Source: Macrostomum lignano (Eukaryota). From it: DNA of 64,000 nucleotides. The position numbers and the translations under genes are program-made. Under the pieces are notes generated by a model. It saw nothing but the letters and a program-made list of their open reading frames with translations, did not search any database and was not told the origin of the DNA. Each line of letters starts with the position of its first letter. Positions within the stretch are counted from its first letter, which is position 1. Below, one piece after another: positions 23,601 through 29,600 of this stretch. The stretch lies in assembly GCA_002269645.1 (NCBI GenBank), contig NIVC01002109.1:62001-126000 (forward strand). Reading direction: 5' to 3'.

Positions 23601-26600
23601 AAGCTGCTTTATTCCATCTTGGCAAGCAAATAGAAGGTTATGCATCGTTTCTGTCTGATTTTTATTACAAATATCATTCTTCCTACATGCAACCATTTGG
23701 GTATTTCGAAGTTATTGATTTTTGCACAACATTCTGTGCAAGATGGGGTTCTAGCTGCTATTGGACAATTTTGGGTCAAGAACAAATCATTAAGAAAATG
23801 TCTATTTTGAGCTGAGAATGCTAAGGAATCCAATCTCGTTAATGCGGTTTGAGGAAAACATATTTACATAAAAATACCATAAAGTGCAGATGTTAAGGAC
23901 TTATACATACTGGGTAATATTTTCTTTAGCGAGGGGCTTTAGCTCCAGGGGTTTTAGCACCAGGGGCTCCAGCACCAGGGGCTTTAGGACCAGAGGCGCC
24001 AGCACCAGAGGCGCCAGCACCAGAGGCGCCAGCACCAGAGGCGCCAGCACCAGAGGCGCCAGCACCAGAGGCGCCAGCACCAGAGGCGCCAGCACCAGAG
24101 GCGCCAGCACCAGAGGCGCCAGCACCAGAAGCGCCAGCACCAGAGGCGCCAGCACCAGAGGCGCCAGCACCAGAGGCGCCAGCACCAGAGGCGCCAGCAC
24201 CAGAGGCGCCAGCACCAGAGGCGCCAGCACCAGAGGCGCCAGCACCAGAGGCGCCAGCACCAGAAGCGCCAGCACCAGAGGCGCCAGCACCAGAGGCGCC
24301 AGCCCGGCGGTCCTTATGCCAACCCAGTGGCTGTTGTTTCCAGATACAGCACGTACTGCAGTCGACGGGTTAAACGTATTTTTCTTAGAAAGGGAAAGAT
24401 TACGAAAAACTTCTGAACAGAATTTGTCTAGAGTGTTCATGTACAGTGTAGCACTTACTTAAAAAAAGTTGGCTAGTTTTTCTGTGTTCAATTAAAAAAA
24501 AGGTTTTTAGTAGTATTTTACGGGAAAAGCTCACATGAGAGCGGTTTAATCAGGCTTAAAGAATTACTTCTACCGTAGGCACGCGCGGGCTGTTTATAGT
24601 ATACACCAAGGCTAATCTGCTAGTCAGGCAATTTGAATAAAACTGTCAGATAGCACACTGGCTAGGCATTATTATTAATCCAATTCAATTCATTCTGGCG
24701 CAGCTATATTGTAGTCATGCAGTTGTTCGTGCAAGGATTTACAAGACTGATTGTGGCTGCGCAACTCTACCCGATATGCAATCGCTGCAAGCACTCACTA
24801 TGGGAGGGAAATCTCCCCCTAGAGACAGATTTTCACCCAGCAGAGATTTGCTGCGATGCTTCATATGTAGCTGACTGTTCCTCTCTATAGAGCAATATTA
24901 CTGTAAGTGCTGGATGGGTAATTTACAGTTAATCGATGCCTGCATTTACACGATAGCTGCTTGTGTAGTCTATCTGTGTCTGCTTCTCTTCACTGAGCCG
25001 CGGCCCTTCGCCGCGGGAACAAGTTATCGATATTGTCTGCTTTTAGTGGCGCATTGGCAGTAATTGGATGGAAGAGAAGAGATCCTGTATTCTCCCATAT
25101 TTTCCTCTTTGGCAAATCAAACGATTAGATTTATGGCCCGATCGCGAGAACGGATAAAATGCTAAATTTTTTCCTGTCTTTTAAACAAGACACACACATG
25201 TCCTGAAGCCTTCTCAAGGTGAAAATAATGTCAGCCTCAAATGACAGTGATTTATGCATTCACTTGAACATTAGCAAGGTATACGTGCAATTTTAAAAAA
25301 ATCTACCGAGCTATCTCCATTCTACAAGTACTTCATTCCATAGCTTGTGATAATGCATAATTTGCATTGATTGTACATATGGGTAGAACCGTAGATCAAA
25401 GTACATGTAGGTTAAACCAGTGATAGCCGATTTCAATTATAGTAAACCAACTTAGATGATGCAACAAATATAAAGTTTCATGTAGCTCAGCGGGGGTTTG
25501 GGTTGTGTGGCTTTGCCAATGTACTCAAATTTGGTCCCTCTGGCCCATGAGCTTGAGTGTGCTCTGTCCAGTGTACTTGACTCTAGACTGTTATAGGCAT
25601 GTTGGTTGTATGCTTCCTACTTGTATAATAAAATCAATTGATAATAAATTCTGCAAGGCACGATTTCTTTTCACAGACCAAGCTCGACCTGTATTTGTTA
25701 GTGACTTGACTTGCAGTCCATAGTGAGCTTCAAGCCTACTTTCAATATTTCTACTCACCTTGCCATACATGTATAAAGAAATGAGCCATGCAACGCATGC
25801 ACTATCACACGAAGAAAATCGCCTCAAGATCTGCTTGTTGTGCTACAAAAAGGGCTCATCAATGCAACGAATAGGTAATGCCTCACTGAAACGCATTCAG
25901 GCACACTTTTTGCCCAACTACAATGCGAATGATGAGCAGCTACCTGCAGCACTCTGTGCCCGATGCAACAAGCTTCTGGCTGACGTCGACAAGGGCATAA
26001 AAGCGCCGAGTGTTTTGCCGAACTCCTCCGAGGTCGTAAAGGTGAGCCCAACAAAGATTACGCGACAGTCCAGCAGTTGTGCTTGCAAAATATGTGAGAC
26101 TGCCCGGTTCAACCCGATTGGGAAAGGACTGGGAACATGGAAACCAGAGCCACATTCGCTTGGACGACCCGCGTGTTCGGATCCAGATCATGGTCTGCCA
26201 CCGGCACAACCTGTTGTCATCTGCCAGCGCTGCCACTCAATGGTTGGCAGAGGTTTGCCTCACTACTGCACGCAAACACAGTGACGAGAAAATCTATTCA
26301 GTAAGTTGTCGCTAGACCGTCGAGGTGCCGAAATCCACGCAAGTGACGTGATCAAAGCTAAGGCTGCTTCCACCGGCTCAAACTCTAGATTTCAATTGGC
26401 AACTAGAGGTCGTGATCTTACAGTGTGTGTTGGGCAACGGGCTGGTAGTTCTACATCAATGAGAGGTGGCTGCGCCGTACCAGCAGAGGAATTCAGCCGA
26501 TTCCAGCAGACGCTGTGTTTGAGCGGTCGGCAAACTAAGTTGGCTGCCCAATTTTTTCGAGCATGGAAAGGACGCAAGAGCATTGAGCCCAATTTGCGCA

Positions 26601-29600
26601 GCAAACTGAGCGCCATCGACTCTGCTCTAGACGATTTGTTTGAGTTGACTAACCTAGAGATGGACTGTGCCAAAGGAAAAAGGGAAATGCGCAGCATTGT
26701 ATTCTGCACTGATCCTCTGGCTCTGATTGACAGAGTGATGGCACGTCGTCAGGTCAGTGCAGATGACGGCGCATTGATTAAAGTTGGCATCGACAGCGGA
26801 GGCGGCTTCTTGAAGTTTTGTGTTAGCATTGTGCCTGCTCAAGGTTTAAAAGATCAACCTACCGGAAGTCGCAGCACGTACGCAGAAGGCGCATGCCGTT
26901 TCCATTTTGAGGATGGAGGAGTCCGTAAACTGCTCCTGCTTGCCATTGCCGAATCTGTTTCCGAGTCCTACGATAATCTGCAGCAGATCCTGAATCTTCT
27001 TAATTTGCAAGGATTTTCATTCTGTGCAGCAGTTGATATGAAAATTTCGAATGCGATCCTGGGACTTCAGTGCTGCAGCAGCACCCATCCCTGCCCTTGG
27101 TGCGAGACTGCCAGGATCGATTTTTCTAATCCAGACCGCACAAACGTGTTGAGATCGATCGGCGGTATTCGGCTACAGGCATTTGAGTACCAGCGCACTG
27201 TAGAAGAAAAAGCGCCGCGCAACGTGTCTGCTGCTGCTTTCAAAAACTGTGTGCGTCCTCCTCTGCTCGAAGTTCCAGACAGCACGATGGTGCTCCAGGC
27301 CATTCCACCAATGGGGCTGCATCTCTTGCTTGGCGTGACCAATCGACTATTCGAAGAACTGGACACTCAACTGCGAGGACTCGAAGACTGTCAGATAAGC
27401 ACCGATGACTGGCTACAGCAGCTTGGCCTTCGACGACCATTGCAGAACGGTGGGAACTTTGCCGGAAACGCCTGCGAGTGTCTTCTAAATGGCGTCGACA
27501 TTTTGATTGCAATGCTGGCTCAGCACAATGTGTTTTCGGCAATGCCTGTAGCTCACGCCCTACGCTGCTTCCGCGATGTGAAGGCCTCGTGCTTTGGTAT
27601 GAGTGTGTGTGGAGACTTTGAGAATCGAGTCCGGGCATTCGAACAAGCCTATATCGATCTTGGAATCCGCGTCACCCCGAAAGTCCACGCTGTTATTGAC
27701 CACGTTGTCCAGTTTTTGAACATGTCCAATATAGCTGGAGAACCCAAGAAGGGACTTGGCTTCTGGTCTGAGCAGGTGGTTGAGACTGCACACCACGATT
27801 TCAGCAGCATGTGGCAAGACTTTCGGATCGATTTTCATCATCCATCGTATCCAGATCGACTGCACAAGTGTGTTGTTGCATACTGCTCTCGTCATGCCTA
27901 AACAAAATGTGAACTAGCTAAATCAATCAAGACTGCGAATTAGGATTATACATTTCTCTTTATTGGGATGAACAAATAGTTCTTAGTCAGACCCTGTAGA
28001 CTGGAAAGCGAAATTAAACAGAACATAATAAACAGGAAGTAAATAATTGGAATCTTTCAAAAAGCGTGTTATCTTACCCATTCAACCCACCGAAATACAA
28101 TGTCCGCATTTCAAAATTCCATTCCAGCTTTGCAATGCATGCATAGAGATTGTTAGTTCACTAGAAAATGAAATCTAAAAAAGACTAGATGATCGCTAGC
28201 TATTGTCTTATCCCGATAGGACCCTAAAGTTATTTTTTCTTTTATTTATTTTTTAATTAATGATAGGAATACATTAGGTAGCTGGTGGAAACCTTAATTT
28301 AATTCTTTCTACGAGCGTTTGGTAAACTTATATCGCAGAAGTCCTTGTTCTTACCCATCATCATGGAAAGGGAATAGCTTCCTTTGAAAACTCAGCAGAA
28401 TTTAATAGAAGGATATGCCTATGGTTCCAAGGGCCAAAATGGCATGAATACGAGAGCTGTGCAGCAAATTTACAGGCTCACAGCCAATGAGATGGTAGCT
28501 ACGTATGAGGAGGGAATAATAGCTACAACTCAAAAGCAAGCGATAGAAAAATATCTGGGATAATATGCCCTTCATGCCTTGCATCACTCACGCACAATTT
28601 TGCGCAATGCTTCTTTGTCCACTTTTATGTAGCATTCTCTGTACTGTACTGTACGAGTGTTTATGCTGTTTTTTGTTACATTTAGTCACAATTATTCATT
28701 GATGTTTCAATTTATACTTTATACTTTGGACTTTGTAAGGTGATGGCATACCTATGAATTATAATGAAAAGTTTCTGACTTGTTTTAAGATCATTTTTTC
28801 AAATTTCACAAACTCATGTAGACACTCATTTTTTGCATCACGCATATTGAAAACCAATAGTAATTAGGTCATTTGGTAATAAAGTGCTGTAAATCAGAGA
28901 TAGCTCTGGAGATTTTTTTGAAATTGCACATATGTTGTGCTAAGGTCCAGATGAGTGTGTAAATTATTGTCATTTCAGGCTGACTTTATTTTCACCTTTA
29001 AAGGGCTTTAAGACATGTGTGAGACAATCTGTAAAGCAAGATTATTGTCCATTTTTTTACTTTTTTTCAAACTGATCTTTGTTTGCAAAAATGAATTGTG
29101 ATTTAAATCCAGAGATATCTGCGGTTGCTTCTGCAGGATCTGGAATATTTAAATTTTTGTAGCTATTCCTCTCTCACTTGTATTGTGTGGGTAGACATCC
29201 CTATTTCACAGTGTATTGTGTGGGTAGACATTCCCTCTTTCACAGTGTATTGTGTGGGTAGACATTCCCTCTTTCACAGTGTATTGTGTGGGTAGACATC
29301 CCTATTTCAACAGGTTATTGTGTGGGTAGATATTCCCTATTTGAACAGTGTATTGTGTGGGTAGACATCCCTATTTCACAGTGTATTGTGTGGGTAGACA
29401 TCCCTATTTCAACAGGTTATTGTGTGGGTAGATATTCCCTATTTGAACAGTGTATTGTGTGGGTAGACATTCCCTCTTTCACAGTGTATTGTGTGGGTAG
29501 ACATCCCTATTTCAACAGGTTATTGTGTGGGTAGATATTCCCTATTTGAACAGTGTATTGTGTGGGTAGACATCCCTATTTCACAGTGTATTGTGTGGGT

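Follow-up and report, generated by a model that had tools for sequence, protein, structure and literature searches.

The 3,829-bp transposon copy in the window (the whole stretch of 64,000 nucleotides analysed) is very probably an autonomous-type member of a DNA transposon family that is young and resides in Macrostomum lignano. The family very probably falls into the RING-less subgroup of the Chapaev group (CMC or 'CMCT' clade); the copy has been disabled by a single CGA-to-TGA change in its transposase gene. The family mostly duplicates 5 bp of its target, as opposed to the 3-4 bp that are usual in Chapaev.

Structure of the element and its copies

The transposon is complete, as originally predicted, and is bounded by CAC ends and long inverted repeats (Table 1); its ends read CACACATG (25193-25200) and CATGTGTG (29014-29021), and the terminal 18 nt are similar to the ends of a distant marine-metagenome family, (C)CACAGTTGTCCTGAAGG. 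A 22-nt repeat block occurs at two places only in the window, one in each arm, where shuffles lead one to expect 0.00 matches. The best-conserved block of the repeats covers positions 24-45 (21/22 identical between the arms) and includes an A-rich 9-mer common to both arms (AAAATAAWG, positions 30-38), which may have a nonamer-like role. Further inward, both arms carry an exact AAAAAAATC at positions 103-111, and in a second M. lignano family (L004) TTTTTAAAAAATCTGCCGA occupies roughly this position. With these two elements in each arm, the statement that no RSS-like nonamer is present has to be withdrawn.

Table 1. Features of the transposon copy, in window coordinates.
Feature	Position	Strand	Remarks
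Left target-site duplication, AGACA	25188..25192		identical to 29022-29026
Left terminal inverted repeat, begins CACACATGTCCTGAAG	25193..25326	+	134 nt, 79% complementary to 28888-29021
A-rich 9-mer AAAATAATG, left arm positions 30-38	25222..25230	+	22 bp past the CACACAT heptamer-like end
Subterminal AAAAAAATC, left arm positions 103-111, inside TTTTAAAAAAATCTACCGA	25295..25303	+	same position in right arm
Transposase ORF, 710 codons + stop, single exon	25769..27901	+	one nonsense codon inactivates this copy
Chapa-type N-terminal zinc domain, residues 14-109	25808..26095	+	candidate ligands H14, C22, C25, C63, C66, C104, C106, C109
GRP motif, residues 132-134	26162..26170	+	nearly invariant; R133 nearly invariant; GRP in consensus
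Short zinc knuckle, C152-x2-C155...H165-x-C167	26222..26269	+	nearly invariant
In-frame TGA, codon 172 (CGA to TGA)	26282..26284	+	only in-frame TGA of the ORF
Putative catalytic D342, GIDSGGGF motif	26792..26794	+	nearly invariant; assigned from motif order and RAG1-like fold
Catalytic D423	27035..27037	+	invariant; aligned to D of RAG1 YDEK motif (profile-to-PDB)
C(2)C zinc ligands, C442-P-W-C445	27092..27103	+	invariant; aligned to RAG1 CTLC (profile-to-PDB)
H(4)H zinc ligands, H640-x4-H645	27686..27703	+	nearly invariant; aligned to RAG1 HKTLAH (profile-to-PDB)
Catalytic E668, WSEQ motif	27770..27772	+	conserved; aligned to E of RAG1 ASEG motif (profile-to-PDB)
3' non-coding interior, ~1 kb	27902..28887		no + strand ORFs of at least 60 aa
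Right terminal inverted repeat	28888..29021	-	minus-strand AAAATAAAG at 28984-28992, minus-strand AAAAAAATC at 28911-28919
Right target-site duplication, AGACA	29022..29026		identical to 25188-25192

The predicted reading frame of about 710 codons is open but for its single TGA, and its product is 99% identical to P0001 (PAA49210.1 and others), an intact M. lignano protein of 710 aa; of the 6 differences, one is the stop codon. In the assembly, the element's protein is annotated as the hypothetical protein genes BOX15_Mlig018049g2 to g7. The ORF listing contains no second long ORF in the interior of the element, and so no RAG2-like gene, in agreement with the original prediction; on the minus strand of the 3' non-coding interior there is a lone 61-aa ORF (28402-28587).

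The M. lignano family has at least five independent insertions: seven loci, representing five sites, show pairwise identities of 98.6-99.8%. Indel noise is present in the assembly: L001 and L003 differ by about 1 substitution and by 8 gap positions. Codon 172 is TGA in the window copy and in the L009 copy, which have different flanks and different duplications, and CGA in the other five. The same nonsense codon is thus found at two sites with different duplications, and the defective copy has therefore been mobilised in trans, with transposase that intact copies supplied. The annotation as genes might point to a transposase-derived host gene that has been domesticated and is no longer mobile, but the probability of this is negligible, given intact 134-nt inverted repeats, duplications at five different sites, dispersed copies of near identity, and a nonsense allele that has spread to two of the sites. 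The element is a genuine cut-and-paste transposon of M. lignano, and it has been mobile recently.

Target-site duplications

Among the five independent insertion sites that make up the family sample on hand, the duplication is 5 bp at three (AGACA, TAATA, TCTCC), 4 bp at one (TTAA) and ambiguous at one (GTCA or GGTCA). The predicted 5-bp duplication thus stands for the window copy and for two further independent sites, but it is not uniform. The alternative 3-bp reading, which the left flank of the window copy would allow as AGA, is impossible at the TAATA and TCTCC sites.

If the true duplication were 4 bp, and the 5-bp matches a product of chance or of the assembly, the family would be a fully typical Chapaev. 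TTAA is clean and GTCA is compatible with this, the Hydra Chapaev-5_HM-type family has 4-bp duplications at all three informative sites (ATAT, TACT, AAAA), and assembly indels do exist, the L003 haplotype reading TCTC where L001 and L002 read TCTCC. However, a 4-bp reading fails outright at AGACA, where the left flank ends in GACA and the right flank begins with AGAC, and likewise at TAATA and TCTCC; it requires a junction-exact indel in three independent loci, and TCTCC is present in two separately assembled contigs. We consider it very improbable. With 5 bp as the prevailing length, three of the five M. lignano sites depart from the 3-4 bp duplication published as a Chapaev hallmark (PMC4079192). 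Duplication length is labile across the clade, at 2-5 bp, and variable even in Transib (PMC12730594; bioRxiv 10.64898/2026.08.26.747230); in RAG-mediated transposition, too, most duplications are 5 bp long and minorities are 4 or 3 bp (PMC1131882).

Zinc region and catalytic core of the transposase

The N-terminal Cys/His pattern of the original prediction (H-x7-CxxC-x33-P-x3-CxxC and two more clusters) is found in full in the ORF, as H14-x7-C22-x2-C25-x33-P59-x3-C63-x2-C66, followed by C104-x-C106-x2-C109 and C152-x2-C155...H165-x-C167; its positions are invariant or nearly so across homologues. The domain is of the Chapaev/RAG1 type, with the Chapa pattern that Additional file 5 of PMC4411706 shows for the RING-less Chapaev-1/2/5_HM and Chapaev-1_AA. 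ZAD domains are the best PDB matches of its predicted fold, and Pfam gives a weak zf-AD match over residues 22-72; this ZAD-like fold agrees with a report of NZD-like Chapa domains and of a resemblance between ZAD and the ZFa part of RAG1's NZD (bioRxiv 10.64898/2026.01.24.700457). The GRP motif that follows is possibly AT-hook-like and may contribute to DNA binding.

The D..D..E core with its CPWC and H-x4-H zinc-site pair is likewise present, together with an LH motif (L517-H518); D342 is the presumed first catalytic residue. The core is predicted to fold like RAG1: in Foldseek searches with the predicted structure, the 43 best matches are RAG1 or BbRAG1L without exception (E 3e-13 to 2e-8, about 570-690 alignment columns), at an identity to RAG1 of only 11-14% in the structural alignments. 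In profile-to-PDB comparisons, the flatworm-centred profile matches RAG1 at E 0.021 and BbRAG1L at 0.44, and a profile of non-flatworm relatives only matches them at 6.4e-5 and 4.3e-4, a difference confounded by alignment depth (85 sequences for the latter against 22). Neither family profile has a sequence match in PDB to the HzTransib chains, which we presume to be among the entries, even at E<=10. A canonical Transib that secondarily gained N-terminal zinc fingers would share the 5-bp duplication, the CAC termini and the transposase of about 700 aa (PMC1131882), but this origin is extremely unlikely in view of the missing HzTransib match, of the alignment of the whole protein, core included, with Hydra Chapaev, and of the reported lack of NZD/Chapa-like domains in Transib transposases (PMC4411706; bioRxiv 10.64898/2026.01.24.700457).

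Placement among related systems

The Hydra vulgaris protein XP_065683561.1 (P0062) is a full-length homologue of P0001 (residues 9-708, 30% identity, E 2e-97), and its N-terminal strings match Repbase Chapaev-5_HM; membership in Chapaev is based on this match of published N-terminal alignment strings to the Hydra protein and on the literature, rather than on a rooted tree with Chapaev-1_BF, Chapaev3, EnSpm, Mirage and Transib. Chapaev-5_HM belongs to the RING-less Chapaev subgroup, with Chapaev-1_HM, Chapaev-2_HM and Chapaev-1_AA (Kapitonov & Jurka 2007, Kapitonov & Koonin 2015). At E<=1e-3 the family profile retrieves 9,904 representative protein clusters, and at E<=1e-30 it still retrieves 1,517; many are full length. 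In a midpoint-rooted tree of such proteins, which has no outgroup, the flatworm sequences group as one clade at the tips of a large radiation, and their branch is of ordinary length. Together with the end-to-end alignment to the Hydra protein, and within the limit of that tree, this places the core inside an ordinary Chapaev clade, the position that was named beforehand as refuting an intermediate lineage.

The Hydra Chapaev-5_HM type has the same HExxR-CxxC...P-x3-CxxC...CxCxxC Chapa domain, GRP motif, CxxC...HxC knuckle and DDE core with CxxC/Hx4H, encoded in one ORF of about 660-710 aa between CAC termini. The inverted repeats are long in both (about 145 nt in Hydra, 134 nt in M. lignano), and both arms contain AAAAAATC, a motif that turns up in 1-3% of shuffles of each end. 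The two differ in the duplication (4 bp at 3/3 sites in Hydra, 5 bp at 3/5 in M. lignano), in the terminal sequences (CACCGTTTG and CACACATGTCC, respectively) and in host phylum (Cnidaria and Platyhelminthes).

EnSpm/CACTA and Mirage, the rest of CMC, differ by 3-bp or 2-bp duplications and lack the Chapa domain. Additional ORFs are typical of CACTA elements. Chapaev3 (Merrow, Garfield, Conan) likewise has CAC termini and an N-terminus of the Chapa type, and it shares C(2)C, LH and H(4)H, the motifs of CMC (PMC4079192). Its duplication, however, is specifically TWA (3 bp), and its inverted repeats are short, at 11-19 bp (PMC3014272, PMC4079192); its N-terminal pattern, CxxPxD...FCYICG...REPxDHxxDCYFC, is unlike that of M. 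lignano. Transib (Transib1-5, HzTransib) has the same 5-bp duplication, one transposase, about 700 aa long, that carries the DDE triad, C(2)C and H(4)H, and a CAC-initiated heptamer-like end with an A-rich element about 22-23 bp inward (consensus CACAATG-N23-AAAAAAATC, PMC1131882); it is without the Chapa/NZD domain (PMC4411706; bioRxiv 10.64898/2026.01.24.700457), and by comparison the M. lignano inverted repeats are much longer and have the exact AAAAAAATC at position 103, not at about 31. With RAG1/RAG1L (V(D)J recombinase; ProtoRAG BbRAG1L), the transposase shares the predicted core fold, the aligned D, CxxC, Hx4H and E, and an NZD/Chapa-type N-terminal zinc domain with a ZAD-like first module; the M. 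lignano element differs in being multicopy and mobile, in having neither a RING finger nor a RAG2-like partner gene, and in its low identity to RAG1.

According to the original prediction, Chapaev fingers are here joined to a RAG1/Transib-type core with an apparent 5-bp duplication, and the element may be a lineage intermediate between Chapaev and Transib/RAG-like transposons, which would preserve a stage in the assembly of the RAG1 domains. Duplications of 5 bp at three of five sites are indeed like those of Transib and RAG (PMC1131882), the RAG1 fold extends across about 600 residues, and the heptamer-like end is followed by the A-rich 9-mer. However, the protein aligns along its full length with an ordinary Hydra Chapaev at 30% identity, against 11-14% to RAG1 in the structural alignments, and it is no nearer to RAG1 than its relatives are, the non-flatworm profile (with the difference in depth given above) matching RAG1 and BbRAG1L better. 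The placement as an ordinary tip clade in the midpoint-rooted tree and the lability of duplication length also argue against an intermediate, which is very improbable. Chapaev has been described as a Chapa domain plus a core distantly related to Transib (Kapitonov & Koonin 2015, PMC4411706), and both this architecture and the motifs C(2)C and H(3-4)H have been ascribed to all Chapaevs (PMC4411706, PMC12730594). The CA/CAC termini and the RAG1-type N-terminal Chapa zinc domain are also published for Chapaev and the wider clade; the predicted combination is therefore not new, and a zinc-finger front end with a RAG1-like core is the normal architecture of Chapaev.

By extrapolation from RNase-H-fold transposases, RAG1 and Transib among them, the M. 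lignano transposase would bind the long inverted repeats as a dimer, via the terminal block that begins with CAC and via conserved blocks further inward, one of which is an A-tract motif; it would cut at the CAC ends, probably by nick-then-hairpin on the flanking DNA, and the 3'-OH ends would be joined to the target with a stagger that is 5 bp in most cases and 4 bp in some. The flatworm Chapaev family is new, and its single unusual trait is the shifted length of its duplication.

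Structure, copies and target sites of the element

Across its two junctions (slashes) the + strand of the element reads ...AACAAGACA/CACACATGTCCTGAAG......CTTTAAGACATGTGTG/AGACAATC..., and the termini CACACATG...CATGTGTG recur in 7 of 7 copies, giving the invariable 5'-CAC...GTG-3' ends that characterise Chapaev. Two blocks derived from the inverted repeat arms have no further occurrence in the 64-kb window (shuffle expectation, 0.17 and 0.00 matches). The element contains one long ORF and no RAG2-like partner gene; its 1-kb 3' interior carries no + strand ORF of at least 60 aa. 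In this absence, as in the location of the element, the Cys/His spacing and the D..D..CPWC..Hx4H..E layout, the window sequence bears out the original prediction.

Minisatellite arrays crowd the window (Tandem Repeats Finder gives 67 rows, periods mostly 15-55 bp, up to 76 copies), and one of them, a 34-bp array of 28 copies, begins 153 bp downstream of the element; such arrays also account for the long ORFs at 15085-16008 and 20991-22515, which are artefacts. The window holds a further DNA transposon, of mariner/Mos1 type, and a 324-aa ORF that is probably a host gene exon.

Features of the window, the second M. lignano family and the target sites of the window family
Feature	Position or locus	Strand	Description
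Inverted repeat arms	25193-25326 and 28888-29021		134 nt, 79% complementary (repeat finder)
Transposase ORF	ATG at 25769 to TAA at 27899-27901	+	710 codons in one frame, interrupted by TGA
In-frame TGA	26282-26284	+	codon 172, CGA to TGA; window copy and L009
Mariner/Mos1-type transposase ORF	46516-47577	-	intact, 353 aa; Pfam HTH_48 (5.7e-12), Transposase_1, DDE_3
324-aa ORF	57292-58266	+	C-terminal match to Elongator subunit Iki1 (PF10483, E 1.4e-5)
Minisatellite arrays (examples)	20654-22457, 29179-30125, 30839-31874, 61131-61946
Second M. lignano family, copy	L004:3503-6870 (NIVC01000691.1)		216-nt, 99% inverted repeats; start CAGCGCGC, CAG not CAC
Target site	window		left AGACA, right AGACA; 5 bp
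Target site	L009 (NIVC01000997.1)		left TAATA, right TAATA; 5 bp
Target site	L001/L002		left TCTCC, right TCTCC; 5 bp
Target site	L008		left cCTTAA, right TTAAg; clean 4 bp, TTAA
Target site	L010		left gGTCA, right GTCAg; 4 bp, or 5 bp if the G-run beside the terminal G lost one G

The window ORF is 99% identical to the intact 710-aa hypothetical proteins BOX15_Mlig018049g2 to g7 of Macrostomum lignano (GCA_002269645.1), and the loci of these proteins yielded six further whole 3.8-kb copies; identity among these six and the window copy is 98.6-99.8%. Three of the copies (L001, L002 and L003) represent one insertion site on separately assembled contigs, so that five independent sites are available. 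The predicted 5-bp target-site duplication stands at three of them (AGACA, TAATA, TCTCC), while one site has 4 bp and another 4 or 5 bp; the alternative 3-bp reading allowed by the original prediction is impossible at TAATA and TCTCC. At the L001/L002 site, L003 reads TCTC followed by a C-run. Allelic copies differ at 8 gap positions against about 1 substitution, an excess of assembly indels that calls for caution over single-base differences at homopolymer junctions; the TTAA junction of L008 lies outside any homopolymer. We read the stagger of the family as usually 5 bp and sometimes 4 bp. The 5-bp duplication that is a hallmark of Transib thus predominates (3/5 sites) without being exclusive, a spread similar to that of RAG-mediated transposition, where 60-92% of events give 5 bp and the remainder 4 or 3 bp (PMC1131882).

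Two copies with 99.7% mutual identity, that of the window and L009, share the TGA at codon 172; their flanks are unrelated and their duplications differ (AGACA and TAATA). A defective copy has therefore been mobilised in trans, which indicates that the family was recently active. In the remaining five copies codon 172 is still CGA and the 710-aa ORF is intact, so that intact ORFs are found at 3 of the 5 sites.

Membership of the Chapaev group

Pfam has no model for the transposase: single-sequence searches of Pfam and the PDB return only a weak, sub-threshold zf-AD match (residues 22-72) and spurious IMP dehydrogenase matches. Four relatives, all members of the flatworm-centred alignment A1, match DUF1280 (PF06918, function unknown; best E 4e-5), which, on these sequence matches, may be a Chapaev-derived transposase domain. 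In a word-indexed protein search the alignment query gave fewer matches than the single sequence, and the profile of A1 (22 aligned homologues) was instead scanned exhaustively with HMMER against 1.84 billion representative proteins; this yields 9,904 clusters at E<=1e-3, 5,129 at E<=1e-10 and 1,517 at E<=1e-30. More than 100 of the best 150 matches cover profile positions 3-685, which makes the complete architecture, with its N-terminus, both common and conserved.

The link to named families runs through the Chapa domain, the RAG1 N-terminus-like zinc domain of Chapaev, which is aligned for RAG1, RAG1L and Repbase Chapaev families in Additional file 5 of Kapitonov & Koonin 2015 (PMC4411706). 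The RING-less rows of that alignment, namely Chapaev-1_HM (HEENR.KVCFLC...PCGICERC...CNCLIC), Chapaev-2_HM, Chapaev-5_HM and Chapaev-1_AA, show the same pattern as the flatworm protein (...LPAALCARC...SCACKIC...GRP...CQRCHSMV), and the Chapaev-5_HM strings HNQCRQVV and ISEYFISE are carried by one of the scan matches, Hydra vulgaris XP_065683561.1 (P0062), which represents a 24-member Hydra cluster. The intact M. lignano transposase (P0001) aligns with this protein from end to end (residues 9-708 with 3-661; 30% identity, E 2e-97), so that zinc-finger region and core are both homologous to those of an ordinary Chapaev. By homology, the element is a Chapaev (CMC/CMCT clade) of the RING-less subgroup, tied to the Repbase families via the published N-terminal strings in the Hydra protein.

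Chapaev elements are characterised by duplications of generally 3-4 bp, CAC...GTG termini and the motifs C(2)C, LH and H(4)H (Zhang et al., 2014, PMC4079192), within a CMCT clade that has CA..TG termini and 2-5 bp duplications (PMC12730594). The flatworm transposase has the DDE core with all three motifs, as defined in these two papers; its family departs from the usual duplication length (5, 5, 5, 4, and 4 or 5 bp). As 3-4 bp is the usual hallmark in the literature and no absolute rule, we call the element a variant rather than a typical member. The combination of Chapaev zinc fingers with a RAG1/Transib-type core, noted in the original prediction, is not novel but the standard description of Chapaev (PMC4411706, PMC4079192) and hence no evidence of an intermediate: Chapaev and Chapaev3 have been grouped with Transib and TransibSU, with cores only distantly related to other Transibs, and the Chapa and RING domains have been placed, fused to the core, in a common ancestor (PMC4411706).

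The catalytic core and its likeness to RAG1

The conserved residues of the core are D342, D423, C442/C445, L517-H518, H640/H645 and E668. An AlphaFold2 model of the transposase (mean pLDDT 77.8, mostly >90 through the core) retrieves from the PDB, by Foldseek, RAG1 and amphioxus BbRAG1L chains as its top 43 matches (E 3e-13 to 2e-8 over ~570-690 columns), ahead of the first non-RAG match, Hermes, at E 0.016. The modelled RAG1 core fold with its ZnC2/ZnH2 modules shows an enzyme that should work like RAG1; it is no proof of membership of RAG/ProtoRAG. At the level of sequence, the A1 profile reaches zebrafish RAG1 in the PDB only at E 0.021, aligning D423, C442/C445, H640/H645 and E668 with the D, CxxC, Hx4H and E of RAG1. 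Better values come from A3, a profile that was seeded on the Hydra protein and built from 85 non-flatworm relatives (RAG1 6.4e-5, BbRAG1L 4.3e-4), so that the resemblance to RAG1 appears as a property of the whole group and the flatworm lineage as no nearer to RAG1 than its relatives, with the caveat that alignment depth (85 against 22 sequences) could explain part of the difference. Neither profile finds HzTransib in the PDB at E<=10. The flatworm protein is far closer to Chapaev (E 2e-97) than to RAG1 (E 0.021 and 6.4e-5).

A neighbour-joining tree of 98 full-length sequences, rooted at its midpoint, joins P0001, P0002 and P0005 (the last from a second M. lignano family) in a tip clade with an ordinary branch length; rooting on RAG1 or Transib would be unreliable at ~12% identity. 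Full-length homology to a Hydra Chapaev, a position at the tips and no extra closeness to RAG1 together speak against the proposed lineage intermediate between Chapaev and Transib/RAG. The transposon group is a known one; the flatworm family within it is new and has a shifted duplication length.

The N-terminal zinc domain

The spacing H14-x7-CxxC-x33-P-x3-CxxC...CxCxxC matches the published Chapa rows, and the ligand positions are invariant or nearly so. Modelled separately, residues 1-200 reach a pLDDT of ~80-90 over residues 11-80, and their best fold matches in the PDB are three Drosophila ZAD domains, Pita 7POK (probability 0.97, TM 0.53, rmsd 2.5 A, 62 columns), CG2712 and Serendipity-delta, all with weak E-values (0.16 and above). 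These matches are consistent with the weak Pfam zf-AD matches and with a preprint on the N-terminal zinc domain (NZD), in which the solved mouse RAG1 domain has a ZAD-like first module, compared using Pita 7POK, and in which two types of Chapa domain are distinguished among Chapaev transposases (bioRxiv 10.64898/2026.01.24.700457). A PDB sequence search with the N-terminal profile gave no match, and the mouse NZD NMR entry is not among the matches returned by either the N-terminal sequence search or the fold search. Between the Chapa domain and the zinc knuckle that follows it lies a nearly invariant GRP motif. The GGRPR motif belongs to the nonamer-binding domain of RAG1; by analogy, GRP could be an AT-hook-like partner of the A-tracts in the termini.

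Terminal sequence motifs

Conservation between the two arms is highest at positions 1-10 and 24-45 and lower in between. AAAATAAWG stands at positions 30-38 of each arm, and an exact AAAAAAATC at 103-111 (25295-25303 and 28911-28919). Transib termini have a 38-bp RSS-like end of CACAATG, a 23-bp spacer and the nonamer consensus AAAAAAATC (PMC1131882); the flatworm ends have CACACAT, a 22-bp spacer and AAAATAAWG in both arms, with exact AAAAAAATC at 103-111. In the repeat of the second M. lignano family, AAAAAAATC stands at positions 29-37 and TTTTTAAAAAATCTGCCGA at ~100, about where the window family has TTTTAAAAAAATCTACCGA; a longer motif at ~100, TTTTAAAAAA(A)TCT[AG]CCGA, is common to both. 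In the Hydra family (L011), each arm has AAAAAATC at position 44. Three Chapaev families carry, in the two arms of their repeats and at varying distance from the terminus, an AAAAAA(A)TC motif identical to the Transib nonamer consensus; each occurrence has a 1-3% chance in shuffles. Because the observation was post hoc and the placement is variable, this AAAAAAATC-type motif is only a lead towards a candidate transposase-binding site.

Related families and the length of the duplication

The Chapaev-5_HM-type element of Hydra is present in four independent copies of 3,078 bp, with termini CACCGTTTG...CAAACGGTG and inverted repeats of ~145 nt. Its junctions, ATAT/ATAT, TACT/TACT and AAAA/AAAA, give 4 bp at all three informative sites, the 5-bp reading failing each time; the fourth copy lies inside an (AT)n tract and is uninformative for duplication length. 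Two Hydra copies, L023 (CP147935.1) and L024 (CP147933.1), lie inside large annotated host genes, a DNA polymerase A-family gene for one copy and a giant C-type-lectin/F5_F8 gene for the other, and are presumably intronic. Within one Chapaev subgroup, the Hydra family thus duplicates 4 bp, whereas the flatworm family mostly duplicates 5 bp, which strengthens the case for duplication length as a labile trait; closely related Transib elements likewise have 5-, 3- and 2-bp duplications (bioRxiv 10.64898/2026.08.26.747230). The flatworm shift amounts to a variant trait and does not link superfamilies.

The transposase of the second M. lignano family (P0005) is 49% identical to P0001 and 47% to the 531-aa ORF of the window; the flanks of the one copy seen, TGTCT and TAGTCT, form no clean duplication. 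A distant marine-metagenome family (P0030; marine metagenome and Tara contigs L012-L021) has the termini (C)CACAGTTGTCCTGAAGG, and the first 18 nt of the flatworm element (CACACATGTCCTGAAGCC) resemble its ends (C)CACAGTTGTCCTGAAGGT; a GGGTATGAAA..CACATG.TC block is common to its repeat and that of the Hydra family. Among these contigs, L015 and L017 have right flanks that are the reverse complement of the left flank of L013, and the two flanks of L014 have no common repeat. These flanks are probably assembly chimeras across identical inverted repeats and, like the incomplete contigs L006 and L007 (P0010), allow no duplication to be called. At L005 (P0009), no terminal inverted repeats were found around the gene.

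Mechanism and implications

The element is a transposon bounded by inverted repeats, with duplications at five sites; its transposase is predicted to fold like RAG1 and carries a conserved DDE triad together with a CCHH site. A transposase dimer would bind the long inverted repeats and cut at their CAC ends, the probable route being the nick-hairpin chemistry of RAG and Transib, and would transfer strands with a stagger of 5 bp and sometimes 4 bp. We consider it improbable that the flatworm lineage independently evolved or retained, within Chapaev, a RAG/Transib-like geometry of ends and target, with a predominant 5-bp stagger, a bipartite end (CAC heptamer-like sequence plus conserved A-tracts) and a nearly invariant GRP motif that could act like the GGRPR hook of RAG1. 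If it did, RSS-like end recognition would be older than the split between Chapaev and Transib/RAG, and the family, with its intact copies, would be a tractable natural system for the role of a RAG1-type N-terminal zinc domain in a transposase.

The flatworm family leaves the current picture of RAG1 assembly unchanged. It strengthens the view that, across the CACTA-Mirage-Chapaev-Transib clade, duplication length is a labile character and a weak classifier. The family is also young and apparently still mobilisable, and its host is a regenerating flatworm model in which transgenesis is possible. Chapaev transposases, none of which is known to have been studied biochemically (see also bioRxiv 10.64898/2026.01.24.700457), contain the only homologue of the RAG1 N-terminal zinc domain outside RAG, so that an active family could be an experimental handle on that domain.
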